Numbered from the stretch's first letter, positions 13,359-34,900 are shown. The stretch is 39,396 nt of DNA from Octopus bimaculoides (GCF_001194135.2 NC_068991.1:2940156-2979551); one strand, 5' to 3'. The notes: generated by a model not told the origin, from the letters alone. Numbers and translations: made by a program.

Positions 13359-13374
13359 CACGAGGCTCCAGCAT

Positions 13375-13680
13375 GGGCTGGACGTTTTGACTGGGCTGGC
13401 GTGCTGGAAGGCTGCACCAGACTCCAATCAAATTTGGCAAAGTTTCTACAGCTGGATGCCCTTCCTAATGCCAACCACTCCGAGAGTGTAGTGGGAGTGT
13501 TTACGTGCTATTTGCCATTTGCCTGACACCAGGTTCCATTTTCCACGGGTGCCATTTGCCTGACACCAGGGTGCATTTATATGCCACCGGCATGGGTGCC
13601 AATTTGTGTCACACCAGTATCTGCCACAACTGTTGTGATTTTGCTCAGCTTGATGGGTCTTCTTCTCAAGAACGGCATAA
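13375..13680 (-). mobile_element. RTE-type 3' tail copy in reverse orientation
   Basis: TTTCTACAGCTGGATGCCCTTCCTAATGCCAACCACTC is the reverse complement of 78-112. Confidence 0.8.
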
Positions 13681-13892
13681 TCTTTACTACTCTAGGCACA
13701 AAGCTCAAAATTTGTGGGGAGGGGTCAGTCAATTAGATCGACCCTAGTATGCAACGGGTACTTAATTTATCAACCCCGAAAGGATGAAAGGCAAATTTGA
13801 CCTTGGCAGAATTTGAACTCAGAACATAAAGAAAGACAAAATACTGCTAAGCATTTCGCCCAGTGTGCTAACATTTCTGCCAGCTCCCCCCA
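13681..13892 (-). mobile_element. SINE family B (GAGCTGGCAGAA head), reverse copy
   Basis: Reverse complement reads GAGCTGGCAGAAATGTTAGC...GAGTTCAAATTC...CCTTTCATCCTTTCGGGGTTGATAAATTAAGTACC; homologous to 19277, 30810 and 37295. Confidence 0.8.
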
Positions 13893-14964
13893 CCTTCCCA
13901 GCACAACATAATACCAAAGGTTTTGGTTATTGCCGAGACCAGAAAGACAAGACCAATGATAAATCATTTCCATAACACACTGGAATTCAAGTATTTGTGT
14001 TATCTTTGAAAGTTTAAATGTATTCATCCACAAAGATGTATTATTCCACAAATGACTTTCCAAAGTTATCTCTACAGACCTTCGTTAAGAATTTGAGCCA
14101 GTGCTGAATGTTATGACATTTCATATACAAATATGTCTGTGTAAACAATGCGATTGAAGATAGAAAAATAGGTAATGGGTGTATATGCAGATTTCGGGTG
14201 TTATTGCTATTTTATCAGCACCACATCCAACTCATTAACCATCCATAAACATATTGCTTAAATACCAGTAATTAATATTCCACAAATACGAGAAATATCC
14301 AATAATATCAGATCATTCAAATAATTAGTTTATCTATTTCATTTTTGCATTTGGTTTGGAAGATTCTTGATGTGAACTTGTGTGTTGAAATATATTTTGT
14401 TTTATCTTGGGGGTGGGGGTCATTATGCCAATAATAAACACATGCACACACACTGGTTATATTTCATTTCTTTATTTCTTATTTGTCAATTGGTTAACCA
14501 ATTAACTGATTGTTTAATTAATGATTCAGTTAATCAATCAATGAGCTATGTTTGTCAAAGTCCTTTCATCACTTTTACCTGTCACTTCATCAGTGATGTG
14601 TGCTGTCTACTCCAGTCCTTCTTCAGGTCTGTCTGTTTGTCTTCTAGCTTGCAGGTTCAATATTTATATTGGTGTGTGGATGTGAATGGGGATGTTTATG
14701 AGAGAGGGTGGGGACAAGAGAAAGAAAGAAAAAGTGTGTATGTATGTATGAGTGTATTTTTCTGCATGCTGTTGCTGCATGTGTGTGTGTTGATACATGT
14801 ATGTGTGTGTGTGTGGGTGTGTTGTGTGTGTGTGTGTACAGATGTGCATTTATGTGGCTCAGTGTGTATTCTGTATGAGAATCCACACTATCCCTTATTC
14901 TGAGAGAGAATATGTGTGTGTATGTAAGTATGTATGTGTGTGTCTGTATATATATATATATATA

Positions 14965-16377
14965 TTAATTGCGGAGTCACTATCAGAACTAGAGAAGTTT
15001 CAGGTGTGGAAGCAAGGTCTAGAATTGAAGGGCCTTAGAGTCAACCTAGCTAAAACCAAAATCCTAATAAGTAGGAAGGTAGATAAAACACAAACCCCTT
15101 CAGGTAGATGGCCCTGCTCAGTATGTAGAAAAGGAGTAGGTAGTAACTCTATAAGATGTACCCGGTGCAAGCTATGGACACATAAGAGGTGCAGCAACAT
15201 CAAAGGCAGGTTAACTAGCAAGTTAGTTTTTGTTTGTGGCAGATGTTCAGGTGCAATAAAGACTGTAAACAAACAGGAAACAACTTCTATCTCATTCCAG
15301 GGTGANNNNNNNNNNNNNNNNNNNNNNNNNNNNNNNNNNNNNNNNNNNNNNNNNNNNNNNNNNNNNNNNNNNNNNNNNNNNNNNNNNNNNNNNNNNNNNN
15401 NNNNNNNNNNNNNNNNNNNNNNNNNNNNNNNNNNNNNNNNNNNNNNNNNNNNNNNNNNNNNNNNNNNNNNNNNNNNNNNNNNNNNNNNNNNNNNNNNNNN
15501 NNNNNNNNNNNNNNNNNNNNNNNNNNNNNNNNNNNNNNNNNNNNNNNNNNNNNNNNNNNNNNNNNNNNNNNNNNNNNNNNNNNNNNNNNNNNNNNNNNNN
15601 NNNNNNNNNNNNNNNNNNNNNNNNNNNNNNNNNNNNNNNNNNNNNNNNNNNNNNNNNNNNNNNNNNNNNNNNNNNNNNNNNNNNNNNNNNNNNNNNNNNN
15701 NNNNNNNNNNNNNNNNNNNNNNNNNNNNNNNNNNNNNNNNNNNNNNNNNNNNNNNNNNNNNNNNNNNNNNNNNNNNNNNNNNNNNNNNNNNNNNNNNNNN
15801 NNNGCCACACCCTAACAGTTGAGGGAACCCGTGGAAGAGGTAGGCCCAGGAAGACCTGGGCTGAGGTGGTGAGGCAAGACCTTCGTACATTGGGCCTCAC
15901 CGAGGCAATGACTACTGACCGAGACCTTTGGAAATGTGCTGTGTGTGAGAAGATCCAGCAAGCCAAGTAAGATCATTGCCAGTACCCCTGGACTGGCTCT
16001 TGTGCGGGTGGCACATAAGATGCACCATTTTGAGCGTGGCCGTTGCCAGTACCGCCCGACTGGCTTCCGTAGGATTTTCGAGCGAGATTGTTGCCAGTGC
16101 CCCTGGATTGGCTTGTGCGGGTGGCACATAAAAGACACCATTTCGAGCGTGGCCGTTGCCAGTATCGCCTGACTGGCCTTCGTGCAGGTGACACGTAAAA
16201 GCACCTACTACACTCTCTGAGTGGTTGGCGTTAGGAAGGGCATCCAGCTGTAGAAACTCTGCCAAATTTAGATTGGAGCCTGGTGTTGCCATCTGGTTTC
16301 ACCAGTCCTCAGTCAAGTCGTCCAACCCATGCTAGCATGGAAAGCGGACGTTAAACGATGATGATGATGATGATGAT
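14965..16377 (+). mobile_element. 5'-truncated RTE-clade LINE: RT C-terminal part with a Cys/His finger, N-gap, C-terminal RGRP motif, structured 3' UTR and (GAT)n tail
   Basis: 14965-15304 encodes LIAESLSELEKFQVWKQGLELKGLRVNLAKTK (segment after the YADD motif) followed by CSVC...CTRC..WTHKRC...CGRC; 15804-15970 encodes GTRGRGRPRKTWAEVVRQDL...*. Gap at 15306-15803. Confidence 0.85.
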
Positions 16378-17023
16378 ATATACATACACACATACAAAAC
16401 ATCATAAGGAAGAATGGAGAATTAGAATAAGATTATTCATCACAGTATTATTCTTAATAAATTCCAATCCAACATGTGTTTCTACTGGATAAGTATCCTA
16501 ATGTCCTTTGATGTAGCATTTATGTGCATTTAGTTGTTCCCTTATTGAGTTAAGCACTGCTTAATTGGTTATCTTTTACAATTCGGTATGTTCCCCGTCA
16601 TTTGATGTGGTTAGCCAGATCTGGATTATATACAAAGATATCTGCCCGGATCTGAATCCCTATTCCCTCATGTTTTATATACATATGCACATATATATAT
16701 ATACAGTTGTATCTTGGGAGGGTCATTAAGCCATTAACAAACACATGTACTGATTCCATTTCACTTCTTTTTTTTAATAATTGTTTAATAAATTAACTAA
16801 TTGGTTGTTTGATTAATCATCCAGTTTATCAATCAGTCAACTAACTTTGCTAAAGTCTTATTGTTACCAACCATGACCTTCATCAATGACATGCCCCTCT
16901 CTGCTCCAGGTCAGCTTTATTGTCTTTTGACAGCTTTGTGTTGCCTATTGGTCATTCTTTCCGTTTATTGTTCTGTTCTGTTCTAGTCTGAATGTTTTTT
17001 TATGTATATGTTGCTGGCGCTTC

Positions 17024-17073
<50 letters not shown>

Positions 17074-17740
17074 CAGTGATAATAATAATAATAATAATGT
17101 TGTTGTTGTTGATGTACTGTAGTTGATATCACATTGTATGTGTTTTATTTTCTTGTTGGGTGTTTGAATGGTGGGCAAAAGTAGGCAAACGCTTAATGTG
17201 AGTGGAATGTTCTTTGCATTTCTCTATTTTATTTTTTAACCTAAGCAGTTCATAAGTCGATTAAGGGATTTGTGGAAGATGCTTGACTCATTGGAAGCCC
17301 TTTTTTTTAAAATTTCTGGGGATTTTGAGTAAATGCTTAATCAACTAGCATTTCATTTTTTGCAATGGAAACACTGATCACTCAAACACTTCTCTGTGCA
17401 TTGCAGACGGATCCAGTCTGCTTAAATTTGTCACATATTCTGTAAATTATGAATGTTGGTGGAGCTGGTCTTTGAAATTCTTCAGTCCATTCCTGTCAAA
17501 CCATTTCTCCATGTTCCAGCACTGCTTGACAAACCACTTTCATTCTTTGATGGACAAACTTCCACCCATATAATGAATGTCTGAAATTAGGAATAATTGT
17601 TTTATTATAGAAAGAATTAGTTAAAAAGAACATAGGATCGTAGAATTCTTATCATAAAAAAGAAACAGAGAATAGAAAAAATGTTTCATTCATATTAAGC
17701 AACTGTATACCTTCTTTTGTCCACCCCTGTATTTATTTAC

Positions 17741-18164
17741 AACGGTTCTAGGAAAGTTTTCCACAAACATTTTTGCTGCAGGAAAATTCCCTCAGGATTT
17801 TGGGCCATGGAAAAGTTCACCGCATAGGAAATTTTGCCACAAGACAAAAGATGAATTGTTCACCGTGGTATATAATTGTTTCAGCCAATTAGAATTGGTA
17901 AAGCAGTTTCTTAACTCATTTAAAATTTCTTTATTCATTCAACAAAATTTTTTTGGTGTAGCAAAAATGTTTGTGGAAATTTTAAATGAGTTCAGAAATC
18001 GCTTTACCCCTCCTAATTAGCTGAAACAATTATCCACCAAGGAGAGCAATTCGTCTTTTGTGTTATGGCAAAATTTCCTATGTGGTGAACTTTCCTACGG
18101 CTAAAAATCTTGAGGCGAATTTTCCCGCAGCAAAAATGCTTGCAGTAAACTTTCTGGATACGTT
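17741..18164. mobile_element. Fold-back MITE with ~190-bp inverted arms and a 46-nt spacer
   Basis: 17741-17929 aligns with the reverse complement of 17976-18164 (e.g. CATAGGAAATTTTGCCA versus TGGCAAAATTTCCTATG). Confidence 0.85.
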
Positions 18165-19016
18165 TTACAGTATACGTAATATGTCTTGTGAAATGTATTG
18201 GTGTTGACTCATCTGAGTCTGTCTAATGTCTATTTCCATATCATATCTATACGATATGGTATGTTATGCCATAGTATGATGTCATGAGGCATATACACAG
18301 ATGTAGAATTAATCTCAATGAAATAACAAACAATATCAAATAATAAAATAATCCTATACTAAAATTAATGAAATCATACTAACAGATATCTTATACGTTT
18401 TATGTAAATTTCTCTTCATATAAATACAATCTGATCTGTTTTATTATTTTGTTTTATAATTTTTGTAATAAGAATTGTTTTATTATACACAGACACCAGG
18501 GTTATTTTTGTTATTGTGTTTTTTTTTTCAATTGCATGACACCTCACCTGTTTGCATCTTTGGATGCAAAATTTTGTTGCCTCTTGACATTTCTGGTTAA
18601 GACTTGCGATAAAAATTAAAGCAAACGCAAAGCAATAATAACGATAATAATAATAATAATAATAATCCTTTCTACTGATAATGAAGAATATCTTAGAACA
18701 GGAGAAACACATGATATAAAAGGATCACAGATAACAAACATATCAAACATATTTTCCCATCATCAGTTGCCAATTGGATATCATTGTATTTTCAATACCT
18801 AGCCATGCATTGTTTAGTCATAAATATTAGCTGATATTCCTAAATACACATCTGTCCATCTCCGCATGTACACACTTTGGGAATTACCATTTCCCTCCAT
18901 CCAGCTCACACTGACCACACTAACACAATTATAACCTTACTTTCTTTTCACTATTGCCATTAAATCCTATGTCTTTGATGTCTTTCCTAAAATTCAAATT
19001 GTCTGTTGTATTTCAG

Positions 19017-19158
19017 GGTGCCCTAACTGCTGACGAAGTTGCTGCCCTTATGTCAAACTACCAATACACGGGTGCCACAACCAACATCCACCCTTATCTC
19101 TCTGCTATGGTCAACTATGCTCAACCCGTCAAGTTCCAGTCGTTTGAAATAGCGGAAG
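19017..19158 (+). CDS. PLCB4: PLC-beta4/norpA-like exon: end of X-Y linker and start of Y box (GALTADE...[29 protein letters not shown])
   Basis: tttcAG|GGT...GAAG|GTACTT; matches vertebrate PLCB4 [23 protein letters not shown] as recalled; phase 0 to 1. Confidence 0.95.
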
Positions 19159-19276
19159 GTACTTCATCTTCAACTTCCTTTCATGTTTCCTTCTCCTCTT
19201 CCTTCTCCTCCCTCCTCTCATTGTTACTCTCACTCTTGTTTTCCACCTCACTCTTTCTTTTCCTTTTCCCCTTCCT

Positions 19277-19447
19277 GAGCTGGCTGAATTGTTAACATGT
19301 TGAATAAAATGCTTTGTAGCATTTCCTCTGGCTCTTTACATTCTGAGTTCAAACCCTGCTGAGGTCAACTTTGTCTTTCATTCTTTCTGGGCCAATAAAG
19401 TAAAGTATTAATCAAGTACTGGGGATGATGTAATCGACTTGCCCCCA
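19277..19447 (+). mobile_element. SINE family B copy
   Basis: GAGCTGGCTGAATTGTTAAC...GAGTTCAAACC...GGGGATGATGTAATCGAC is homologous to the other family B copies. Confidence 0.75.
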
Positions 19448-19456
19448 CTCCCTTTA

Positions 19457-19502
19457 CTAAGCATTTTGTCCAGCATGCTAACGATTCTGCCAGCTCACCA
19501 CC

Positions 19503-19503
<1 letters not shown>
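19457..19503 (-). mobile_element. SINE family B head fragment, inverted relative to the 19277 copy
   Basis: Reverse complement reads GGTGAGCTGGCAGAATCGTTAGCATGCTGGACAAAATGCTTAG. Confidence 0.8.
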
Positions 19504-19543
<40 letters not shown>

Positions 19544-19592
19544 CCTTCCTTTATTAGCCACGAGGCCAAGTATATATAATAATAATAATAAT

Positions 19593-19627
<35 letters not shown>

Positions 19628-20029
19628 TAACTTAATGACTTCTTATATATTTTTCTTGATTTCTTTTCCCATTATTTCTAATTTTAATTTATTACATCTT
19701 ATAATGCACATTTGTTGCAATGATAGATATAACAGCTTATGTATTTCGATTGACCTATCTATCTCTCTGTCTCTCTGTCTGTCTGTCTCTCTCTCTCTCT
19801 GTATTTTCTAATCCCTCTCTTCTTCTCTCCACCTTCATCATCACCCTAATCCCATGGCCTCTTCTTTCTTCTCTCAGCACAATTTTCCTTGATTTTTTCC
19901 TTTCTAAATAAAACAATATAGAGTTTAAAATCAAGAACACCGCCACCCACCCACAAAACCACCCCTGTCTTCCACCACCACCTCCTTCACAACCAACACC
20001 ACCTCACAAACTCTATCACTTGCAACACA

Positions 20030-20305
20030 ACACCAGCATCATCATCATCATCTTAGTCACCATTGTTAATTATCATTATCATACCAAACCATTACTGCCA
20101 TCAGCCTCTGCCAACACCATCATCACAACCACCATCACCACCCTCCCTAACACTAACACCACTATCACCTCCACCATTACCACCACCACCACAACTACTG
20201 CCATCACCATCCTAACAATCACCACCACCATCATCACTATCACCAGCACCAGCATCACCACCAGCCTAACCACCACCACCACCACCACCACCTCGATTAT
20301 ACTCA
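20030..20305. repeat. Degenerate (ACC/ATC)n trinucleotide tract upstream of alternative exon A
   Basis: Visible directly; explains the poly-Thr and poly-Val ORFs in the ORF track. Confidence 0.9.
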
Positions 20306-20384
20306 CCTGATGCACAACCCCTCTCACCCCTACCTCTATCAATTGCTACTTTCTATGTCAGTTTGCATGTCTTTATACTTCCAG

Positions 20385-20469
20385 AGCGGAACATCCATTA
20401 CCACATGTCGTCGTTCAACGAGAACGCAGGTTTAGGCTATTTAAAAACTCAGGCTATAGAATTTGTCAA
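20385..20469 (+). CDS. PLCB4: PLC-beta Y-box alternative exon A, (E)[27 protein letters not shown](N)
   Basis: cttccAG|AG CGG...GTC AA|GTATCCTT; 85 nt, phase 1 to 2; nearly identical to vertebrate PLCB4 [29 protein letters not shown] as recalled. Confidence 0.95.
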
Positions 20470-20477
20470 GTATCCTT
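20470..20477 (+). promoter_or_regulatory. U12-type 5' splice site GTATCCTT after exon A
   Basis: Matches the minor-spliceosome donor consensus RTATCCTT; codon phase fits the exon at 27442. Confidence 0.9.
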
Positions 20478-20812
20478 GTTCGTTCTAAACTTAAACCAAA
20501 AAAAAAAAAAGAGGAGAAAAGAAAAAAAGAAAAACTCCCAATTCTACCTGCTGTTGAGCCCTGATGGGAATGGGAACTCAAAATGATCGAGCATTTGGAA
20601 CCCTGCAAACAAATGTCAATCTGTTGATTTTGCTACCCTGGCCTGCCCTACCGCCACTCGCTTTTCCCCCATTTTTCTTTATATATTGTATATCTAGGTA
20701 TTATGTGTGTGTGTGTCTGTGTGTGCATGTGTGTATGTGTGTGTGTGCACTTTTAATAGGTGGTCCCCCTTGGTTCAAACACAAAGCTTTACAGCAGTTC
20801 ATAAAGCAGGTT

Positions 20813-21298
20813 NNNNNNNNNNNNNNNNNNNNNNNNNNNNNNNNNNNNNNNNNNNNNNNNNNNNNNNNNNNNNNNNNNNNNNNNNNNNNNNNNNNNNNNN
20901 NNNNNNNNNNNNNNNNNNNNNNNNNNNNNNNNNNNNNNNNNNNNNNNNNNNNNNNNNNNNNNNNNNNNNNNNNNNNNNNNNNNNNNNNNNNNNNNNNNNN
21001 NNNNNNNNNNNNNNNNNNNNNNNNNNNNNNNNNNNNNNNNNNNNNNNNNNNNNNNNNNNNNNNNNNNNNNNNNNNNNNNNNNNNNNNNNNNNNNNNNNNN
21101 NNNNNNNNNNNNNNNNNNNNNNNNNNNNNNNNNNNNNNNNNNNNNNNNNNNNNNNNNNNNNNNNNNNNNNNNNNNNNNNNNNNNNNNNNNNNNNNNNNNN
21201 NNNNNNNNNNNNNNNNNNNNNNNNNNNNNNNNNNNNNNNNNNNNNNNNNNNNNNNNNNNNNNNNNNNNNNNNNNNNNNNNNNNNNNNNNNNNNNNNNN
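20813..21298. other. Assembly gap inside the intron between exons A and B
   Basis: Run of N. Confidence 1.
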
Positions 21299-21552
21299 TA
21301 TATATATATATAAGTTTATAATACAAGAAGATGGAATGAATAGGCTTTGATCCAAATCACTACAATCGTTTCTGTGCATTAGTATCAGTTGGTAATTGCT
21401 GAGTGTTTCATATATTAAACACGTCATTGCATTGATATGATTCAGCAATAGGCGTGGACCTGCATGACTTCATGTAGGTTGGGTCAACCTATACCCTGTG
21501 AGCAAAATAGCACGGGCAGAAACTGTGCAGAGGGCCTTTGATAAACCTGTAG

Positions 21553-21589
<37 letters not shown>

Positions 21590-22542
21590 CACATGTAATG
21601 GAAAAAACCCAGTGCAGCCAAAAATTGCTTGCAGCATTTTATTCAGTATTGGTCACTTCTCTTTGTAGTTGATTCAGTTTGTCTTTCATTGTCCAGCAAG
21701 ATCAGTGAAATCAGTGCCAGACAAAGTACTGGACTGAGAGGTCATCATAATTGTTAACCACCCCACATCAGTATTTGAAGCCAGTTATCCGTAACTGTTT
21801 TCCTTCAACCCCATTGTCATTGCAGCTCCTTGTCGGAACAGGGCACCAATTTTACAGTAAGGATCCCACCTACCTATCTGGGTACTTAGTGGCCTACCAA
21901 CCTATTTATAAATTTATCTACCTACCTACCTAATTACCTACCTACCTGCCTACCTCTCTTTTTCTCTCTCTCTATTGCCACAACTTCCACACCCCAAAAC
22001 AGCCATCTTCCCAGTAGCAAACTGTTCCACAGGTCCAGAAATACTACGGAATTGAAACAGGATTCGATGGACTGACAAAGGACATTTTAGATTTCATTCA
22101 CCTTTCTACCGAGAACAGGTCTTGCTCTAGAAGATTAGAGGCTGTTTCAAGTCAATTAATTAATTAATTAATTGATTGATTAATTAATTAATCCATTAAA
22201 ACAATGGTCTGATTTCTAACTAAATTGTCAACCTTTAACTTCCATCTCCTCCAGAGCCAGTAAATAATTAAAGGTAATGCAGTCAATAGTTACAGGTAAT
22301 TAGCATTATGTCTAGTTAAAAAAAAACAACAACAAAAGATATTCATTATCATTGTTACTGATGTTGTTGTTATTGTTTTTGTTGAATTTCTTTTAACAAC
22401 TGAAAATATTTTGTGAATTTTAATATTTATCTAACTTGTTTTCTCTTGATATTAATTTAAATGTAATGTTTTAAATTTGATTTTACAAACATACCATATA
22501 CTACAATTAATATGCATACACACTCATACACATCTGTGCATG

Positions 22543-22584
<42 letters not shown>

Positions 22585-23626
22585 CAGACGCGCACATACA
22601 CAGAGACAGAGGATAGTGGAAAAATATAAACCTCACTTTAATGGTAGTTGGAGTTGCAGGTTCTGCTTGGCTGAGAAGAGGATCATACTAAAGAACTCTT
22701 TTCACCCAGGCACCTATCTTAATCATAAGAGTGAAATTTTCTAATCCTGTCCACATGAGTGCAGGTTTGTCTTAGCATACTGGTTGGCAACATATCAGTT
22801 TTTTCCCCCCATCTAAAATCTGAGGAGTAAATATAGGACTTGCTACATCCATTTGTGGTATATATACATACATAAACACATATTTGACTCAACACAATTT
22901 TAAAATTAAACCTCTGCAACCATCTCCCATCTCTACTCACTCCACGTGACTACACAACTCTTCTCTTACTTGGTCCAACCCCACCCTACAAGTAAGTATC
23001 CAGCATACTATGATGGGCTTTTTTCCAGATCTCAATCCAAGGGATGTAACTCCGGTGAACTAAAATGTTTTTCTCCCTCAGTTCCGAACTGGACAATTTC
23101 ATTCTGGGTTTTACAACAGATATAAAAACAGCTGAATGAATGTGACACATTCAGACTTCCAGAAGGAAAAGCGCTTGCATCATACCATTCCTTACAGCCT
23201 TTTCTGATGATTGTTGGGATTATCTCAACTCTTGGTATGAAACTGATAGATGAAGCTGTTCATGTGAGAATATAATATTGCATTTTATTATTATACACGT
23301 GTGTGTGTGTGTGTGTGTGTGCCTGGACACTGTCTGTACTTGAAGAGACATTTGACCGTTTATAGAAGCAATCCCTCTACGCACATATACATTCCCCCCC
23401 TCTCTCTCTCTCTCTCTCATCTCTCTGCATCTTTCTCTCACGTTTGTGTTTTTTTTTCTCACTACTCCTACCATTGATGTTGTTGCTAATTATTAATGTC
23501 ATTGTTGTTGTTGTTGCATGAATCGTTGTTGTTTTCATTTGTTTTTGTTGTGTTTTTATTTATTTTCACTTCTTTTTGGTGTCGTTTTTTTCTTTTCTTC
23601 TTTTTTCTTTTGGTTTTATTTGCAAG

Positions 23627-23711
23627 CTAGAAGACTTCATTACAACATGTCTTCGTTCAACGAGAACGCAGGACTGAGTCTCATCAAACACAGCTGCTTG
23701 GATTTTGTTGA
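23627..23711 (+). CDS. PLCB4: PLC-beta Y-box alternative exon B, (A)[27 protein letters not shown](D)
   Basis: Long U-rich tract then ttgcaAG|CT AGA...GTT GA|GTATCCTT; 85 nt, same phases as exon A, no stop codons. Confidence 0.9.
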
Positions 23712-23719
23712 GTATCCTT
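23712..23719 (+). promoter_or_regulatory. U12-type 5' splice site GTATCCTT after exon B
   Basis: The first 11 nt (GTATCCTTGTT) are identical to the exon A donor. Confidence 0.9.
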
Positions 23720-23892
23720 GTTGTATTGTGCTCTGTCCGTCCATCCCTCCATCCATCCTTCTGTCCATTTGTCTGTGTGTCTATATCTGGTGGGGGAGTG
23801 GTGAGGGGACAAGGATGATAATACCAAAGTTAAATAGATGCATAGTGTTAATTGTGTGTGTGGAGTAGTGGGTGCAGCTTTGAATCATATTC

Positions 23893-24118
23893 TTAACCCT
23901 TTAACAATTAAACCAGTCGTAACTGGCCCAAACCCTTTTTTGTTTTATGCTAATACTGACCAGATTCAACCTCTCATACCTAACCTACAATGTCATCCTA
24001 AAAGTGTGCAATCGCATCATCGAAATCTTGAAGCTACAAGATAATCCATGATTAGTTCAAAACAATGTAGATAAATAAGGATTATATTTAACTGGGTAAT
24101 CTGAATGCTGAAAGGTTA
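23893..24118. mobile_element. TTAA/CCCT MITE, copy 2
   Basis: Homologous to 8483-8710 (CCTCTCATACCTA..CTAC, GCTACAAGATAAT); ends GAATGCTGAAAGGTTA. Confidence 0.7.
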
Positions 24119-24189
24119 CGGACCAAAGATAACATTTAAGGAATTCTACCCATGACCATCCCTTTTTACTTTTCTAGACTCCCAGATGT

Positions 24190-24250
24190 GCACATGGCTG
24201 TGTGGTTAAGACGTTTGCTTTGCAACCACATGGTTCCAGGTTCAATCACA
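24190..24250 (+). mobile_element. SINE family A head fragment
   Basis: TGGCTGTGTGGTTAAG...CAACCACATGGTTCCAGGTTCAATC. Confidence 0.7.
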
Positions 24251-24622
24251 GACATAGTTCTTGAGACAAGTGCCTCCAACTGTGATCCTAGGGCAATTAA
24301 TGTGGAGTCACATGTATTTTCTAGCACTACACCTGCCCAGGTTTGGAAAGGAGTTGTTATATGTTAAGAGAAGAAGGAAAATAATGGATCAAAGATAAGC
24401 TAAACTTTTGACCACACTTGTTGCCATCTTCAGAGCATGATCAGATGTCCCTTTGATCAAGGGACCAAAGTTAATGTGTTAGAAAGTGATTGGTTTAATT
24501 CAGAGATCAATACCTCCAAATCTATTCCATATTGTTGCGAACATCTTATTTGTGGATTAATTGATAAGAGTGTTCATATTGTGAGTTTACAGCTAAAAGT
24601 TCTTGCTACATGGTAACCCCAC

Positions 24623-24827
24623 TGGAGCTGGTGCCACATAAAATGCACTGGTGCTGGTGCCATGTAAAATGCACCTTGAACACTCTGTAAAGTGGTTGGC
24701 ATTAGGAAAGGCATCCAGGCATAGAAACCTTGCCAAAACTGACACTGGATTACAATACAGTCCTTAGGGACATTGCATCCTGTTGAACCAACCAGCCAGT
24801 GACAGAATGGAAAACAGATATCGAATT

Positions 24828-24857
<30 letters not shown>
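24623..24857 (+). mobile_element. Diverged RTE-type 3' tail with (GAT)n
   Basis: GTGGTTGGCATTAGGAAAGGCATCCAG...GGAAAACAG...(GAT)n. Confidence 0.7.
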
Positions 24858-24859
<2 letters not shown>

Positions 24860-25477
24860 ATAGTAAGTTGAGGATTACATTAGCTGATGTGTGCTTCTCT
24901 CTATAAAATAGGCAGGATGTGGTTTGAGGAAGACTTGATTGTTATTTCATGCAGGTTGAGCAACTATGTACGGGTGGGGGTGCCCTTGTTAGTTCACGTG
25001 CATATCGATGCATGCATGTACAAGACAGAGAGGGAGAAGAGAGGGGGGAATATTTGAATTCAAATGAAACTATATAACTTTACCACCACCACCACCACCA
25101 CCACCAGTACCACTGTTTCTGTTGTTTCCGTGTAAACATTGTCCTGTAAAAGTAGTGATATTGTAATTATATTAATTAATATTTGTTGTATAATCAGTTA
25201 TTTGCTTATGAATTGTTTTATTTTATTTTATTTTAATATTCTTGTATTTTTGTTAGAGGGTTTTTTTTGTGATTTTTGTTATTTTAATTTTAATTTATTT
25301 TTGTGCTTATTTATTAACTCATTTTGCTGATGTTTATTGTGAATTGTATTTTACAGTGATACCAATGTGTTTTTGTTATTAGTTAACCAATACCTTTTGC
25401 CCATCCTTCAAACAAGCATGATAATCCTTTATTTGATGTGTATACATGTGTGTTGATATATATATATACATATATAG

Positions 25478-25680
25478 GCACAGGTGTGGCTGTGTGGTAA
25501 TTAGCTTGCTTCCCAACCACATGGTTCTGGGTTCAGCTCTACTACATGGCACCTTGGGCAACGACGAAAGCCTTGTGAGTGGATTTGGGAGACAGAAACT
25601 GAAAGAAACCCATCGTATATATATATATATATATATATGTTTGTGTGTCAGTGTTTGTCCCCCCAACAGTTGTCAAGTGA
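25478..25680 (+). mobile_element. SINE family A, 5' half
   Basis: Homologous to the 37508-37905 copy, including its internal (AT)n/(GT)n VNTR. Confidence 0.85.
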
Positions 25681-25708
25681 TGTTGGGGGAACAAACACAC
25701 ATACCCAA

Positions 25709-25770
<62 letters not shown>

Positions 25771-25862
25771 GAAGACACTTACCCAAGGTGCCACACTGTG
25801 GGACTGAACCTGGAACCATGTGGTTGGGAAGCAAGCTATTTACCAAACAGCCACACCTGCAC
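25681..25862 (-). mobile_element. SINE family A, 5' half, inverted and abutting the previous copy
   Basis: Reverse complement reads CAGGTGTGGCTGTTTGGTAAATAGCTTGCTTCCCAACCACATGGTTCCAGGTTCAGTCCC. Confidence 0.85.
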
Positions 25863-27421
25863 CTACACTCTGTCACACACACAGACCAATTTAAATTCAA
25901 ATTACATACCAACTAACCAAATAACTCCACGTGTTTTCCTGTATGTCTGAAGGGAAATGAGGAAATTATGAAAAGCACCAGTTTTATAGTCCATATATTA
26001 TTTGACTAGAATCCACAGTTGGATATGTCATAAAGTACATCATAGAAAGCCATAAAGGAGATAGTTTGCTCATAAAATATTTAGTTTCACCATCATTAAC
26101 AAACAATGATAATTAGTTATTTATAATGTAAATTATATGATCCAATTGCATTGTCAAATCTTCAGAGATTCATAATTCTCATTTTTAATTTGTAAAATTA
26201 AGAATGAGAATTACGAATCTCTGACGATTTGACAACTTCAGTTTAGGAATGGAGGTCTTGGTATTGCATTTCTTCCTTCATAAAGCATTTCAGAAATACA
26301 TGGTTCATATCCATTATGAATACACTGGATTGGTGACAGTGTTGCTATCAGTGGACAATGTAACTGGATGATATAATTTATATAATGTATGACTAATTAT
26401 TATTCCTTGTTAATGAAATGTGTGTAAGATGATGTTAACTGAATATCTGAATGAGGTGATTAACTGTGGCTGTTTGGGATGCTAACAATTTGGCATAGCT
26501 GACTGGAGATTGAACCTATTTGAGCCACAGTACTTTTTGGCACTGGAGGCAAACAGAGAGAGAGGGGGGGGAGGTGCAGCAATACAATCTGATGTCAAGT
26601 AAGTCACCATTGACTCAGCAATGCCAAATAAATGGCACCAAAATGCATAGATCATTGTTGATGTAAAAAATGGATAAACTGATGCTTTCCAAGAAATATA
26701 TCCTGTAGTATCAGGCTTCTTTAAGTCTCCCTTCAGAAATATAATGGACCAGTGATTGGCTCACTGGAGATTTATAACTTACAAGATTACTGTTCTCAAA
26801 AGAGGGAAATAAACTAGAGAAGAATATGAATGGATGTGAATGTGTGACTATATATTTATGTGTGTGTGTGTATATAAATGTGTGCACGTGCACACACACA
26901 CACACATAGTGAGAGAGCGAGAAAGAGCATAAAGGGAGATAATATGTGTGTGTGTAAATTCATATAACTATACATATATATANNNNNNNNNNNNNNNNNN
27001 NNNNNNNNNNNNNNNNNNNNNNNNNNNNNNNNNNNNNNNNNNNNNNNNNNNNNNNNNNNNNNNNNNNNNNNNNNNNNNNNNNNNNNNNNNNNNNNNNNNN
27101 NNNNNNNNNNNNNNNNNNNNNNNNNNNNNNNNNNNNNNNNNNNNNNNNNNNNTATATATATATTTTGTTAGGCATGCTAATGATTCAACACACTCACCAC
27201 TTTAATAATAATAATGATATTAATAATAATAATAAAGAAGAAGAAGAGTTTTTTGTTGCTATATGGCTGATGGATGGGGACCAATTCCAAAATGTTGTTG
27301 CAGTGGGGGTCTTTTTATCATGTGTTTAACCATAATAATAATAATAATAATAATTTTGTTCTTTTAATGCTCTGCCCTTTTCAATAAAAGATTTTCCCCC
27401 ACCCCACAATATGCTGCCATT

Positions 27422-27441
27422 TTCCTTAACACGTTCCCCAG
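27422..27441 (+). promoter_or_regulatory. U12-type branch point TTCCTTAAC and short 3' splice site
   Basis: TTCCTTAACACGTTCCCCAG: consensus minor-spliceosome branch site ending 11 nt before the exon, with no extended polypyrimidine tract. Confidence 0.92.
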
Positions 27442-27514
27442 TTATAATAAGCGCCAAATGAGTCGTATTTACCCAAGAGGTGGAAGAGTCGATTCCAGTA
27501 ATTATATGCCACAG
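27442..27514 (+). CDS. PLCB4: PLC-beta Y-box exon [24 protein letters not shown]
   Basis: Signature Y-box motif [13 protein letters not shown]; CAG|GTAAGT donor; phase 2 to 0. Confidence 0.97.
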
Positions 27515-28079
27515 GTAAGTTTGTGTTATTTTTTCACTCATTTGTTTTGTTGTTTGGTTTGTGTGTGTGTGTGTATGTGTGTGAGACAGAGACAGTGGGG
27601 GAAGGGTAAACAAACAAAAGGAAAGAGTCATGAAATCTAAATATTTCCATGAAGTGTCCAAAGATCAGATGTAATGCTTGCCTCTGTAAACCCTTAAGTA
27701 ATGCAATCTTAATTCCACATTAATAATTCAAAAATATATAACAAAAAGCACAAGTGCTACTCATAAGAAGAAAACATCATCCCAACACACACACACTTTT
27801 AATCATGAGTAACACCTAACTAGAGCCATCACAATTGCATTAAATATTGGGTATCAGTAGCGTTGAGGATCTCTTCCGGTGAAAGCACGTCTTTAACAAA
27901 GCTAGGATTGCCTCCCAAAAACTAATGCTTCTTGTCAGAGCTAGAGGACACTTCAGCTCATAATGATTATTGATAGACTATAAAACTCAGATGTAATCCT
28001 CAATGGATTATTGCTCAACAGCTGCACAAACATCATCGACTGCAGAAAAGTTCCACGTGTCTGGTTGCCATAATGTCAC

Positions 28080-28350
28080 TCCCTGACACATTCCAGCTTC
28101 TGGCTCACACTTAGGCATACTGTATCTTCTCTTTCTGCCACTACTGAGATGGCCTCTGCTCCTTGAAACTGGTTGGGCTCATGCCACTCCCATTCCGGTA
28201 TTCACGCTTTACTCATCTCTCCTCCGCCCATTACCTCTGCTGTGTCCAACATTCCCAAGGGCCTGCACTAATCATTCCTTCCTTAGAATGTCATCCCTTT
28301 GGAATCCCTTCCTTGTTCATATCTTTCCCACAAATGTTAACTTAGAAATA
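28080..28350 (+). mobile_element. Possible decayed non-LTR retrotransposon C-terminal remnant (CR1/Jockey-like)
   Basis: Broken translation resembles LFYRY..G.CS.EL...SF.PR...LWN.LP...FP. 1041-1260 may be a similar remnant. Confidence 0.4.
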
Positions 28351-29225
28351 TTAATGGCATGATTCCCTCCAGTTCAGGGAAGCTGCAATGGCAATGAACA
28401 CTTGTAAACCTACCCATCTTGCTAGGCATATCTGACCACTAACTCACATCTCCCTCGACCAGTTACCCAACTACTTGGTTATTTACCTGACTGGACTCTT
28501 TCACCACTTTTGAAGATGAAAGTTCCTCAAGACACAGCTGCACAGTGTTCCTAGTTCAGCGTTTTGTCGTGTTCTGTGTTTTGGTTGGCTGAACAACCTG
28601 CACAATGAACATTATTCGAGTGGGTCTGATATGTGCAGATCCAGTCCCACTCTCTCGTCCTTCAATCATGTATTAGTTTGGTACAACAAGTCCATTGGTT
28701 ATCAGCATGCAGGATTTGTATGCAGCTATCTTCTCTTAGATGAGCAGTTAAAGAGCCAAATGACCTCTTCTACCCAGGGTCCTTTGGGTTGTCTGTGAGT
28801 GACCTTCTTCAGGAGTTAATTCCATGATATGTTAATTAACCGATAGCTGGGACCCTGACAGGTGCTACTGCTCTGGATCAAGTGTGGCTAAGAGGTGGCT
28901 CCACACTCTTCAAAGCCCCAGAACTCACAAACCATGGCCCCCACTTCAGGGAGTGGTTTAAAGTCATACCTTGGACTCACCAATTTAGCCATCAACAACC
29001 CAGCTATTTATGCACTTATCCTTTAATCTTTCTGGTTATGTAATTATCTGATCAATTCCATAAACAGCCATCTTGTAGCCAGCCATCAACTTCCCCCACC
29101 TATCCTCTTCCTTATTCAGGCCCTCATCCTAGACATCTTCACTTCCTGCCAAACCACCCATCCATTTATCTACCCAGTTTCAATAGCAGTTATTTAGAGT
29201 ACAACTTCCTGTTTATTTTTCACAG

Positions 29226-29329
29226 ATCTTCTGGAATGCAGGTTGCCAAATGGTGGCGTTGAATTTCCAAACTCCAGACCTTGCTATGCAGCTTAATCAG
29301 GGAAAATTTGAATACAATGGAAACTGTGG
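29226..29329 (+). CDS. PLCB4: PLC-beta Y-box exon [34 protein letters not shown](G)
   Basis: cacAG|ATC...TGT GG|GTAAGC; conserved [14 protein letters not shown] motif. Confidence 0.97.
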
Positions 29330-29420
29330 GTAAGCTGATAGTTTTGATAATTCTTATCATTTTAATTATAATTTACCTTAGTCTTAAATTCTTAAAGTCT
29401 ATGGTATTGTATATACATAC

Positions 29421-29492
<72 letters not shown>

Positions 29493-30258
29493 GTAATTAT
29501 ATATATATATATATTATTAATGCTAAATAATACCTAGTTCATAAAATATGCTTCGACACACGAATTCACATAAAGAATCTTGCAAACCACTTACAAAAAC
29601 GAAATATGTGATTAACTCATTTTTGTGTTTCATCTTTCTAATTACCTAACAATTATATTCAGTGGCTTCGTAATACCATTAATATAACAGTCCTATCTCC
29701 AGACACTAAAACTATCAGAATCCCTAGCTAGGCAGCCGATGAAGGCTAAATTGTTTATTGTTCTCTCTGTTACATAGTTTTCTTGCTTGTGCTTATTGTT
29801 TACATTGAAGTGTCTGTTTGTGTGTGTGTTTTCATGTGCTGGTTCATTTTAATGTCCTTTTTTTATCCATGCTAAAATGTGTTTTATTAAAAACACTGCT
29901 ATATTCAAGTTTGATCATTTTTATTGAGGATTTTTTACATTTCCATGAAACCTTTATGAGATTGTGCTAAAAGTTTTAAATGGATTTAGAAGAAACATTG
30001 TCTTATACGGAGCTAATAATGAAATATGAAAGATGCAGAATGAAAATGATCAAACTTGAATGTTGTCGTAATTTGAATGTTTAAAAGAAAAGTTTCTCTT
30101 ATTCACACACACACACACACACACACATACACACACACACACACACACACATGATATTAAGAAAGAAAAAGAAGAGCAAAAATAATGTTGATATTTAACA
30201 TTTTTTTTTTTTTTCTTGTGTCTTCCTCTTCTCCTCTGATGGCTCCTGCTTTCTTTAG

Positions 30259-30361
30259 ATACCTGCTGAAACCTGACTTCATGAGGAGGCCAGACCGGAC
30301 ATTTGACCCATTTTCAGAAAGCCCTGTAGATGGCGTCATTGCCGGACATTGTTCAGTTGAG
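30259..30361 (+). CDS. PLCB4: PLC-beta exon [34 protein letters not shown] (end of Y box, start of C2)
   Basis: ctttAG|A TAC...GAG|GTAAGT; phase 2 to 0. Confidence 0.97.
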
Positions 30362-30664
30362 GTAAGTTCACTTTACAGTTTGTCCAGATAATCCCTTGTC
30401 CAGATAATCCCTTAAATATTTACTTTAAACATTTGGATATTATTTGTTCGTCCATGTTTTCTGGTATCATATTTTAATCAACTGGAGTGGATTAAGATTA
30501 AGCTTGCAGTTTATCACTTTCAGATCTTATTGTACAGAGTACAAATAGAGATTTTTATCTGTTGGCAGATATCAGCACTGATCAGCAAACAGTTTTCTTC
30601 ACTGAAATTATAAACAAATCCAGTGACATCTGTAAGGTTAAACATCCTGGTGTTTCTAGCTGAC

Positions 30665-30760
30665 AAGTCAATAAATTAAGTACTAGTAAAGCACTGGGGT
30701 CAGTGTGATCAACTGGTCCCCTCCTCCCAAATTTCAAGCCTTGTGCCTTCCATAAAAAGG

Positions 30761-30810
<50 letters not shown>

Positions 30811-30985
30811 GACAGTGAGCTGGTAGAATCGTTACAGCACCAGGCAAAATGCTTAGAGGCATTTCATCAGTCTTTAAAGTCCTGAGTTCAAATTCCACCG
30901 AGGTCAACTCTGCCTGTCATCCTTTCGGAGTTAATGAAATAAGTACTAGTTATGTGCTGGGGTCAATGTAATCAACTAGACCTCC
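30665..30985 (+). mobile_element. Two SINE family B fragments separated by (ATT)n
   Basis: 3' part at about 30665-30760 and a head-containing copy at about 30810-30985. Confidence 0.75.
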
Positions 30986-30986
30986 C

Positions 30987-31019
<33 letters not shown>

Positions 31020-31404
31020 AGGTAGAATAGCAGAAAAGGGAGTGGGTAGGTAAGTGCACTAGAGTGTGAACAGTGTTACAAGTGATTAGAGATGGGGTAT
31101 GAAGTGAACATAGCGAGTATCGATTTGGGGGAGGGGAAGAAACAGGAGTGGGACAAAAAATAGTATATATATATATATATATATATTTGATGTCATCTGG
31201 GTAATAACCTCATAATGTGCATTTCAAAGCTCCAATACAGTTATTGGCTACCATGTGCCATCATACAGCAAGAATACTTCTTTTACTGAATATACAAGTG
31301 GAACTCTGTGAGTGTATGCAGAATTTGAATAAAAGTTTATAAAACAAGAAAATGGAATTCCAAGAACATGTTGTTATCATTTGAATTGTCATTTCTAATT
31401 ACAG

Positions 31405-31569
31405 GTAATCTCTGGTCAGTTCTTATCTGATAAAAAAATTGGAACATGCGTTGAGGTGGATATGTATGGTCTACCAACTGACACCATTCGTAAGGAATTT
31501 CGCACCAAAGTAGTACCAAATAATGGTCTCAATCCAATCTATAATGATGAGCCATTTGTCTTCAGAAAG
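31405..31569 (+). CDS. PLCB4: PLC-beta C2-domain exon [32 protein letters not shown]...EPFVFRK
   Basis: acAG|GTA...AAG|GTATGA; 165 nt, open frame. Confidence 0.97.
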
Positions 31570-31944
31570 GTATGATGTCTTTTTTATTTTCTTCATTTTT
31601 TTTCTTCTTATTTTCTTCTGGGTGGATGAGATGGAACAGAGGTAAATTTTTAGATTCGGAACGAACTATTTGATGTTTACCTTGTCAGGTATATCGCTGT
31701 GCCCCAGTATGGCCTCTGCCAATTGATTGGAATAAGTAAAAATGTTTTGTTTTTATCTTGTTTTGTTTCCGTTGTGGCCAGGACAAGTAACATAAAGAAC
31801 GACCCTTCATCAGTTGTCGGCTGTCTATCTACACCTCATTTCGAGCATTGAACAACAATATACTCCTGCACCTATGTATAATGCAACTGAACACACACAC
31901 ACACACACGCCTACATACACACACACATGCAATGTATACATTGC

Positions 31945-31976
<32 letters not shown>

Positions 31977-32081
31977 TTGTGTGTGCACATGTGTGTTCAC
32001 ATACCCCCACCCCACACACACACACACAAAAGTTTACTGTTTGAGAACTTTGTCGATTGTTATTTGGTTTTCGTCTTCCAG

Positions 32082-32181
32082 GTAGTACTACCTGATCTGG
32101 CAGTTCTTCGGATTGCTGTGTATGAAGACACTGGTAAGCTGATCGGTCAGCGGATCCTGCCATTGGACGGATTACAAGCTG
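32082..32181 (+). CDS. PLCB4: PLC-beta C2 exon [33 protein letters not shown](G)
   Basis: ccAG|GTA...GCT G|GTAAGT. Confidence 0.97.
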
Positions 32182-32523
32182 GTAAGTGGACTTCATTGTA
32201 TCTTTGGTGGTAAGGTCAGTGTCGGTCAGTGTCTGATTTTTTTTTTTTTATAAGTGGGTTGAACAAGTGTACCCAGGGCTACAATATCGAGTGTGCCCTT
32301 TCAACCAATAAAGAACCTTCTATTCTGTAGGTTGATCTGCTGAGCACAGCAGCCAAATCCCCCTGAAATCCCTACAGAAAGAGAGGTCTATGGTTGGTAC
32401 ACCTTTGATTGTAGACCTGCTGGATCATATCTAAACAACCCCCACACTTTGTGACCCTCACATAATTAACCTGACGGACAGTTTACTAAAAACTATTTTC
32501 TTTCCTTCTTCTCCTCCACTCAG

Positions 32524-32628
32524 GCTATCGGCATATATCACTACGAACAGAAGGCAATTTTCCCCTATCATTACCGACAGTTTTCTGTCGAATCATCCTG
32601 AAGACCTATGTCCCAGAAGGCTTTGAAG
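32524..32628 (+). CDS. PLCB4: PLC-beta C2 end exon (G)[34 protein letters not shown](D)
   Basis: ctcAG|GC TAT...GAA G|GTAATT; too short for the ORF track. Confidence 0.96.
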
Positions 32629-32724
32629 GTAATTTATCAACATTTTTATCCTATTTCTTCCTTTCTTCTTTTTTTGGCTATTATTATTGGTGCAACAGGG
32701 TAGATACCAGCCTGCCTGGAGCAA

Positions 32725-33380
32725 AAAATGACTGGACAAGTGTACCACCATGCATTTTGGGAGGAAGAGCTCAACATCCACATACTCTCTCCACAGCATT
32801 AATATCAAGAAGTGACCTGGGCTTTACTGTCAGCAGTGATTTATGCTGGACAAGGCACGTCTCTAAAATTGTCAAGAAGGCCGAGGGTGTCTTGGCATCA
32901 CTCAGGAAAGCTTTTGTCATCGCTCTCCAGCTATCTATTTAAGGTTATATATGACTATTTATAATTTGCATTACCATTCTGGAACCCGTATCTTGTTCAG
33001 GACATTGACCTCCTGGAAACTGTTCAGAGACGTGCAACCAAGCGAATACCCTACATCTGGCATCTGCCATACTCTGAGCAACTTGCTTCCCTGGGCTTAG
33101 ATACATTGAAGCTTCAATGTCTGGCAACTGACTTGGTAAACACCCACAAAATTATTAACCACCGTGCCAGTCTTGAGCACCTTTTCGAGCTCCATGTGTC
33201 TAATACACATGTGGGCATGCCCTGCAAAGTCAGAAAACAGCACAGCTCCCATGACTTTCGGAAACATTTTTTCACCCCCTCCGAGTTGCTGAACAAACTA
33301 CCTGCATCAGTTGTTAGCTGCCAAGATATTGCATCCTTTAAAACCTCCAGGCTTCCTGAAATCTACCAACACAACACCTG
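32725..33380 (+). mobile_element. CR1-clade LINE 3' fragment (frameshifted RT C-terminus)
   Basis: Motifs [52 protein letters not shown]...NKLPASVV. Confidence 0.8.
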
Positions 33381-33534
33381 ATATCCCCCGCCTCCATACG
33401 CATGCACACATGTATATCATGACTCATACACTTCCTCCTCCTCCTCTGTAATTTTCTATTTCATGGCTAATAGAGCCATGTTTGTCTGATGAAGAAGCTA
33501 ACTCACCCATGTCTATATGTTTTACTCTCAACAG

Positions 33535-33798
33535 ATTTTGTGTCTGCTGTGTCAGCACCAATCCAATTTCAATCCATGGCAGACAAGAGAGAACAACTTA
33601 TGCTCGGGATGGGGATCGATGAAAATGATATCGGGGATGTACCTGTGGCAAAAGAGAAAAACAAATCTACCCAGAATGAAAATGTCAAACCAACTCCTCA
33701 GACACCAAACGGCCCTTCCAAAGACCAAGTGAAGGAAATTCCTAAACAGTCCAAACAGATGACATCAACATCACAACCTCCACCTGCCAAAAAAGACG
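33535..33798 (+). CDS. PLCB4: PLC-beta proximal CTD (Gq-binding helix-turn-helix and autoinhibitory helix) plus CTD linker
   Basis: caacAG|AT TTT...GAC G|GTTCGT; FVSAVSAPIQF...KREQLMLGMGIDENDIGDVP aligns with PLCB4 IVDALSDPKKF...[20 protein letters not shown]. The donor was chosen for phase match to 34281. Confidence 0.88.
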
Positions 33799-34280
33799 GT
33801 TCGTATTCTCCTCCATTTTCTTGTTTTTTTTTAGTTTGTTTTTATATTTGTTGTTGCACTTTAATCCTTTTGATACCGACCCAGCTAGAATTGCTTCTTG
33901 CTCTGTGGTACAGATGTCGTGTTTTCAAAAGTTCTGGATTAGATTTATATTTAGAATTAATGGAAAAGGTGAAGAAAGAAAATAATCAGTAGAAGACATG
34001 AGAGAAGGGGACTTCAATGTGGTCCCTCTATATGCTAGCAATAACAGCCTAAATTTCCTTCAATCCACACCCTTCCAACTGCTTCTAATGTACATCTGCC
34101 CAAATGTAGAACTGTACCTGGGGGTATTACCTTACTAGCAATTTTGATTTACAAACTTACAATTTAGCAGCCTTGCTCAGCAATCTGATAGTTTTTAAAC
34201 AAATGTGTGGTCATTTAACATGCTAGAAATAAGAAGTCAACTATAAACGATCTTTAAAAATCCGTATTTCTCATATACAG

Positions 34281-34509: not shown

Positions 34510-34623
34510 GTGAGTATTTGCCATTATTTTCTCATTTCATTTACCATTTCTCTTCCAATGATCATCTTCTGCATCGATTTTCTTTTCTTCCTCCTCTGTT
34601 TATATTTTATTTATTTTAATTTT

Positions 34624-34899
<276 letters not shown>

Positions 34900-34900
<1 letters not shown>

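Follow-up and report, generated by a model that had tools for sequence, protein, structure and literature searches.

The closest described counterpart of the splicing arrangement reported here is that of exons 6a and 6b in the vertebrate JNK genes MAPK8, MAPK9 and MAPK10 (Letunic 2002; Chang et al. 2007). In these genes a U2-type donor lies upstream of two tandem homologous exons, each with a U2-type acceptor and a U12-type GT donor, and one U12 branch site and acceptor lie downstream. The hybrid intron between the two exons, studied experimentally in JNK2, 'cannot be properly spliced' (PMC1874599; reviewed in PMC3584512 and PMC8329584). In JNK2 it is mainly competition between the U2 acceptors that decides which of the two exons is used, and a long pyrimidine tract drives the use of exon 6b (PMC1874599). 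We describe identical wiring in Octopus bimaculoides, around two alternative exons (A and B) of a gene resembling that for phospholipase C beta-4 (PLC-beta4). The stretch analysed (hereafter the window) is 39,396 nucleotides (nt) long (GCF_001194135.2 NC_068991.1:2940156-2979551), and positions are counted from its first letter.

The octopus locus differs from JNK in gene family, PLC-beta rather than MAP kinase, and in phylum, which points to an independent origin. The octopus exons are 85 nt long, so that the reading frame also enforces exclusivity, whereas exons 6a and 6b of JNK are 72 nt long and frame-neutral. The octopus case is known from sequence alone and the JNK2 case from experiment. 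As in JNK2, the octopus hybrid intron ends in a long pyrimidine tract, although this tract is not conserved in Biomphalaria (68 per cent pyrimidine).

Other described cases are wired differently. Among human clusters of mutually exclusive exons, 5 of 629 have U2/U12-incompatible sites (MAPK8/9/10, MAPK14, CEP170 and CRTC1; PMC5740500, Appendix Fig. S18). MAPK14, CEP170 and CRTC1 likewise have exclusive exons with competing U2- and U12-type sites, but their U12 site lies 5' of the alternative exons and two of the three have AT-AC introns; in the octopus the U12 sites are 3' of the exons and the introns are GT-AG. Exons 11/11a of TMEM87A/B are a further case of U2/U12 competition (PMC8329584). 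Unlike the octopus gene, they involve one U12 intron only, around which a 3' site of U2 type and a 5' site of U12 type are the rivals. The human catalogue lists no PLCB gene (PMC5740500), and in the literature searched we found no paper that connects U12-dependent exclusive exons with PLCB4 or phospholipase C. The JNK-type wiring itself is thus already known, and the PLC-beta case is apparently undescribed.

Splice sites of the exon pair

Exons A (20385-20469) and B (23627-23711) lie between two constitutive exons, at 19017-19158 and 27442-27514, all on the + strand. We put the probability that the pair forms a JNK-type U2/U12 interlock, and that A and B would therefore be mutually exclusive, at about three in four. 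Both were delimited by translation and tblastn, and exon B also by its class signature (see below). Each is 85 nt long, is entered in phase 1 and left in phase 2, and encodes 28 residues plus a last one, (N) in A and (D) in B. The two are identical at 51 of 85 nt and at 16 of 29 residues. The upstream exon, which holds the start of the PI-PLC-Y box and ends in phase 1, was identified by tblastn with residues 608-655 of the Gordionus protein P0193, by translation and by Pfam. The downstream exon, found by tblastn, encodes 24 residues, is preceded by the signal CATTTTCCTTAACACGTTCCCCAG and is followed by the U2 donor GTAAGT.

Directly after the final GAAG of the upstream exon stands GTACTT (19159-19164), a U2-type donor that is not U12-like. 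After A and B, the introns open with GTATCCTTGTT (20470-20480 and 23712-23722, respectively), a U12-type GT donor that matches RTATCCTT. The acceptor region of exon A (20348-20384, ending in TTATACTTCCAG) is U2-type and 70 per cent pyrimidine, and its best match to the U12 branch-site motif TCCTTAAC has 4 mismatches. Exon B is preceded by a pyrimidine-rich tract of about 100 nt with an AAG acceptor, TTTGCAAG (23527-23626), and the last 37 nt of this region are 89 per cent pyrimidine. In both octopus and Biomphalaria, no stretch within 45 nt 5' of the A and B acceptors comes closer to TCCTTAAC than 3-4 mismatches. Before the downstream exon, the octopus sequence fits TCCTTAAC without a mismatch and that of Biomphalaria with one. 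The octopus match is the U12 branch-site consensus TTCCTTAAC (27422-27430), the sole TCCTTAAC in the window, and it ends 11 nt before the exon at 27442. With the branch A placed at 27429, the distance to the CAG 3' splice site is 12 nt, and with 27428 it is 13 nt; the optimum for this distance in U12 introns is 11-13 nt (PMC3584512). The AG at 27440-27441, placed by sequence and translation, is common to both U12-type introns (20470-27441 and 23712-27441).

Between A and B runs a hybrid intron (20470-23626) with a U12-type 5' end and a U2-type 3' end, and no U12 branch-site-like motif was found in its readable part. Its nominal length is 3157 nt. The other introns measure 6972 nt (A to the downstream exon), 4468 nt (upstream exon to B) and 3730 nt (B to the downstream exon); all of these lengths are nominal, as the sizes of the gaps that they include (486 and 170 nt) are estimates.

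An earlier note on this DNA had proposed the interlock, and most of what it claimed is borne out. The U2 donor at 19159, the U12 branch site 11 nt before the next exon, the mixed ends of the intron at 20470-23626 and the U2-type character of the A and B acceptors (at least 3 mismatches to TCCTTAAC) are all as it described, its arithmetic for the introns of 6972, 4468 and 3730 nt is correct, though approximate through the gaps, and every sequence-level feature of the JNK 6a/6b logic that it invoked is present. It had both alternative exons ending in a U12 donor; the motifs are there, but they start the introns and are not the ends of the exons. It did not remark that both exons are 85 nt long, which is not a multiple of 3.

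The arrangement is hard to ascribe to chance. Across the window the two motifs occur about as often as expected (RTATCCTT 3 observed against 3.6 expected, TCCTTAAC 1 against 1.1). It is their placement that stands out: the sole two copies of RTATCCTT on the + strand of the 39-kb window are exactly at the ends of A and B, and the sole TCCTTAAC is at the optimum distance from the next acceptor. From base composition, the probability of ATCCTT after a given GT is 4e-4 and that of TCCTTAAC in a 6-position slot 1.5e-4, or about 6e-8 jointly.

Predicted splicing outcomes

Under the interlock, two routes would give a productive message. Route A would combine U2 splicing of 19158 to 20385 with U12 splicing of 20469 to 27442, and route B would combine U2 splicing of 19158 to 23627 with U12 splicing of 23711 to 27442. 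Joining A to B would pair a U12 donor with a U2 acceptor and skipping both exons would pair a U2 donor with a U12 acceptor, and neither pairing should be efficient for either spliceosome. A mixed choice, in which the upstream exon is joined to A by the U2 machinery and B to the downstream exon by the U12 machinery, would end in a transcript that still contains the hybrid intron and can be processed no further. If the octopus locus behaves like JNK2 (PMC1874599), the hybrid intron would be unspliceable and exactly one exon would be forced. From the arrangement of sites we infer that both A and B are expressed and that they exclude each other.

Leakage products would be caught by the reading frame, as 85 is not divisible by 3. 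In translation, A joined to B gives AAC followed by TAG, a stop at the junction, and a message without either exon runs for six codons before it meets a stop. Wherever both exons were seen, in three species (3/3), each is 85 nt long. The frame thus enforces exclusivity independently, and spliceosome incompatibility and this frame lock probably act together.

Because both isoforms end at the same U12 acceptor, the activity of the minor spliceosome should limit total mRNA. The suggestion in the earlier note that isoform output is tied to the minor spliceosome therefore holds in part: total output would be gated through the shared acceptor, but the A:B ratio need not be. More likely, the two U2 acceptors compete with each other, or the two U12 donors do, or both pairs, and the ratio follows from this.

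The predicted isoforms keep an invariant MSSF.E core and differ on either side of it, in the seven residues that precede the core and the twelve that follow (in B, the stretch SLIKHSCLDFVD). As in the PLC-delta1 structure, the MSSF.E motif presumably contains the serine that contacts the substrate 4-phosphate.

Related loci

The same tandem pair occurs in two other loci. In Biomphalaria (L001, a sequence with no Ns) the upstream donor is GTCAGT, exon A (85 nt) is followed by GTATCCTTCT and exon B (85 nt) by GTATCCTTCA, the hybrid intron is 3057 nt long, and CCCTTAAC places its branch A 9 nt before the exon that begins YNKRQ; there is no third copy. Exon A is identical between octopus and Biomphalaria at 25 of 29 residues. 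The second locus, L008, is a 2.2-kb contig with the upstream donor GTAGGT, an 85-nt exon A followed by GTATCCTTCC, an 889-nt hybrid intron and an 85-nt exon B followed by GTATCCTTGC; the contig ends after the B donor and before the next exon, and its wiring matches up to that donor. Other contigs carry one of the two exons. L010 has an upstream exon (donor GTAGGT) and exon A with the donor GTATCCTTAT, L007 has exon B with the donor GTATCCTTGT, and L004-6 have exon B at 90 per cent protein identity, with the acceptor TTTGCAAG followed by CTAGA and the donor GTATCCTTTC.

The earlier note had proposed asking whether the orthologous intron is U12-type in other animals. It is: at the orthologous position GTATCCTT is present in Biomphalaria, L008, L010, L004, L007, the sea cucumber Apostichopus, L003 and Neotoma PLCB1, and altogether 11 orthologous donors in nine loci retain GTATCCTT exactly.

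Exon B forms a class of its own. The B exons share A1, I20, H22 and C24 (an 'IKH.C' signature) in 5/5 cases, and the A exons share E/D1, Y19, L20, Q23, A24 and N29. These shared signatures indicate that B is one orthologous class and not the product of repeated independent duplications. Of the differences between octopus B and the B exon of the cephalopod-like locus L004, 10 are synonymous and 3 non-synonymous, and the introns on either side can no longer be aligned. This pattern is the signature of a putatively translated exon under purifying selection. The acceptor of exon B is AAG, not CAG or TAG, and TTTGCAAG with the exon start CTAGA (23619-23626 and onwards) is identical in L004 (at about 544-551). 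As the L004 introns flanking B are otherwise unalignable to the window, this suggests that the weak acceptor is itself under selection.

We searched protein collections with two queries. A 30-residue B peptide, scanned without a profile against 1.84 billion representative proteins, matched five genomic read-through open reading frames (ORFs) and one annotated single-exon protein from Gordionus; the B-type genomic ORFs read through the GTATCC donor as 'EYP' or 'AYP'. For a composite of the upstream exon, B and the downstream exon, the top matches were all A-type or single-exon forms. The spliced fragments seen in the collections were of A type only, from other organisms.

Submitted gene models break in this region. 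In Biomphalaria, a model of 78 aa (L001 10001-13697) ends at the end of exon A and omits B, and another, of 557 aa, begins with the YNKRQ exon. In Apostichopus (L002 10001-18448) the model, of 152 aa, continues past the GTATCC donor without splicing. Standard annotation apparently fails on the U12 intron and the exon pair.

Origin of the exon pair

A U12 intron at the same codon position, preceded by a single upstream exon, is found in Neotoma PLCB1, in the Apostichopus PLC-beta4-like gene and in L003. In Neotoma lepida (L011) the single exon ends in GAATTTGTAGA, followed by GTATCCTTGA, and the intron closes with TACTTAAC and then 12 nt to an exon beginning YNKMQ. Apostichopus (L002) has one exon with the donor GTATCCTTAT and the branch motif ACCTTAAC, and L003, a PLCB4-like locus, has one exon with the donor GTATCCTTCT. 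Minor introns are reported in about 60 per cent of human PLC genes (PMC6865273), an enrichment with which an old U12 intron in this family agrees, and they are still numerous in molluscs, Octopus sinensis among them (PMC10639083). Loss of the intron can be seen as well. In the genomic ORFs P0027, P0028, P0035, P0063 and P0084 the exon runs straight into YNKRQ, so that the two exons are fused; these ORFs, in which the U12 intron is thus lost, are probably from arthropods. An ORF from the tick Rhipicephalus (P0059) reads through EFVK into FEVSE, where AA is followed by GTTTGA, a non-U12 donor.

The single exon next to a U12 intron in Neotoma, Apostichopus and L003 indicates that the ancient U12 intron came first and the exon duplication later. 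Judged by these comparisons, the U12 intron is old and common to the PLC-beta family, and the sole novelty of the mollusc type is the duplicated upstream exon. On the proposed course of events, an ancient U12-type GT-AG intron splits the Y box between '...EFV(N/D/E)' and 'YNKRQ...', and in a mollusc ancestor the 85-nt exon upstream of it would have been duplicated in tandem together with its U12 donor, giving the JNK-type interlock.

Assembly gaps and alternative explanations

Two assembly gaps interrupt the octopus introns. Gap 1 (20813-21298, estimated 486 nt) begins 343 nt 3' of the A donor, lies in the hybrid intron and is followed by a (TA)n run. Gap 2 (26983-27152, estimated 170 nt) has (TA)n on both sides and ends 270 nt 5' of the branch motif and 290 nt 5' of the exon at 27442. 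The unread intron sequence totals 656 nt, and the gap flanks are unique sequence ending in (TA)n. Because both gaps are intronic, they affect no exon reading frame and touch no splice signal, and merely make the intron lengths approximate. We looked for a second assembly of the locus by exact look-up of the exon B, upstream-exon and downstream-exon ORFs, which returned no record. Continuity across the gaps is supported indirectly, by the exon order, which is collinear with Gordionus P0193 and the same as in the gapless Biomphalaria locus.

Several points weigh against the interlock. The acceptor at 27441 is 70 per cent pyrimidine over its last 37 nt, and TTAAC fits the U2 branch consensus, so that some U2 use of this site is possible; this pyrimidine content comes without a long uninterrupted run and owes much to the branch motif, and the Biomphalaria counterpart has 51 per cent. 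As U2 sites, both GTACTT, the donor of the upstream exon, and AAG, the acceptor before exon B, are weak. The unread 486 nt of the hybrid intron could contain a cryptic U12 3' site or a third copy of the exon. Neither the composite nor the B peptide found any B-type spliced sequence in the protein collections, although this counts for little because the collections are poor in mollusc transcripts. Last, the frame rule alone gives the same outcome at the protein level, and the sequence does not decide that incompatibility is the operative barrier.

This last point is the core of the strongest rival, in which the reading frame and nonsense-mediated decay (NMD) are the chief enforcers, the U12 donors are merely inherited by position, and the hybrid and skip junctions are spliced appreciably and their products degraded. 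Frame and NMD would yield exclusivity at the protein level without spliceosome incompatibility, the exon length of 85 nt is kept in 3/3 species, and both the A+B and the skip products meet stop codons at once. There is also precedent, as in 60 per cent of human clusters of mutually exclusive exons the exon length is no multiple of 3, and for 22 per cent of these clusters reads that join the exons were found (PMC5740500). We nevertheless regard this account as unlikely to be the main one. The exact retention of GTATCCTT by 11 donors in nine loci speaks against it, GTATCC is a poor U1/U2-type donor, and a JNK2 hybrid intron of the same kind is reported not to be properly spliced (PMC1874599); moreover, the two mechanisms are compatible. 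That competing intronic RNA structures choose the exon (docking and selector elements, as in insect Dscam or mammalian ATE1), with the types of splice site secondary, seems very improbable. There are many long inverted repeats in 19100-27500, but they are (GT)n/(AC)n/(TA)n microsatellites and copies resembling short interspersed elements (SINEs), none of which adjoins an exon. The introns flanking B are unalignable between the two cephalopod-like loci, with no conserved selector seen there, and an Rfam scan of the whole window gave no family match.

It could also be that B (or A) is a decaying pseudo-exon, or that the tandem pair is an assembly artefact, a haplotype duplication beside the gaps, with one isoform only. 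The gaps in both flanking introns, the lack of a B-type transcript in the collections, and the submitters' models, which stop in this region in Biomphalaria and Apostichopus and omit B in Biomphalaria, would fit this. We consider it close to refuted and give it the least weight of all. B has an open frame, a conserved length, splice signals and the class signature in five loci, and its substitutions against L004 are mostly synonymous. The same tandem pair stands in the gapless Biomphalaria and L008 loci, and two more lineages have a B-type exon followed by a GTATCCTT donor; because the arrangement recurs in this way, neither chance nor assembly artefact is tenable. Haplotype duplication as a source of A and B was rejected on identity, which is only 51 of 85 nt (60 per cent). 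The U2/U12 interlock, acting together with the frame, remains our preferred explanation.

Gene identity and setting

Spliced isoforms A and B match the PI-PLC-Y domain (Pfam) over its full length, with 147 and 145 bits, respectively, and a C2 domain follows. The crystal-structure sequences of PLC-beta2 and PLC-beta3 match both spliced products at E of about 1e-22. Residues 608-1313 of the Gordionus PLC-beta4-like protein P0193 align exon by exon and collinearly across 19017-38109 (tblastn). Named relatives are without exception 'PLC beta-4-like' (Biomphalaria, Apostichopus and Gordionus), and the assignment to the beta4 subfamily is by these names of best matches and not by a phylogeny. Judged by these matches, the window holds the Y box, the C2 domain and the C-terminal region (the 3' two-thirds) of a beta4/norpA-like PLC gene on the + strand; the X box and N-terminus lie outside it. 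A tblastn search with a full-length PLC-beta4-like protein found no exon by similarity in 1-19016. Either the intron before the Y box is longer than 19 kb or it holds fast-evolving exons of the X-Y linker that are invisible to tblastn. The introns further downstream carry ordinary U2 donors, such as GTAAGC, GTAAGT, GTATGA and GTAATT. The sequences of the cephalopod PLC21 crystal structures (3QR0, 3QR1) are no closer than human beta2 and beta3; they therefore belong to a different paralogue and are uninformative on A and B.

Repeats are scattered through the window. Two open-frame fragments within PLC introns (32965-33195 and 34929-35003, both +) look retroelement-like, an impression from the translations alone; one begins FALPFWNPYLVQDIDLLETVQRRATKRIPY and continues to VNTHKIINHR, and the other reads RVVGRPQKTYIQQLEEDVAEDVGFQ. 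An identical 75-nt (25-codon) stretch occurs at 49-123 and 16192-16266, 16 kb apart, and the intron after exon B contains an inverted pair of 87 nt (25475-25561 and 25779-25865) that is 84 per cent complementary; both are probably SINE-like. Finally, similar segments in the same orientation lie at 19468-19530, in the intron before A, and at 27168-27230, in the intron before the downstream exon and right after gap 2. They share ...GCATGCTAA(C/T)GATTC...CTCACCAC(C/T)TTAATAATAATAAT... and probably belong to a repeat family with a (TAA)n tail.

Implications

Other cases of this kind come from a handful of vertebrate genes, and the octopus locus would add one from an invertebrate, of separate origin and in another kind of signalling enzyme. 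The arrangement is conserved between a cephalopod and a gastropod, and it shows how such a pair may originate, by duplication of an exon beside an ancient U12 intron. Taxa with one exon and taxa with two at the same U12 intron form a natural comparison set. The model predicts two PLC-beta4 isoforms that differ in a 29-residue segment of the catalytic Y box, and the broken gene models at the U12 intron in Biomphalaria and Apostichopus make it likely that these isoforms are mis-annotated in mollusc genomes.

A further and more doubtful proposal is that the A/B switch predates the split between gastropods and cephalopods and that kinetic competition of the two U12 donors for the one U12 3' site sets the isoform ratio and not only the total output. 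If this were true, a ready-made exclusive pair would arise whenever an exon next to a U12 intron is duplicated in tandem, a recurrent route taken independently in MAPK and PLC-beta genes, and the activity of the minor spliceosome would tune which PLC-beta4 isoform neurons or photoreceptors make.

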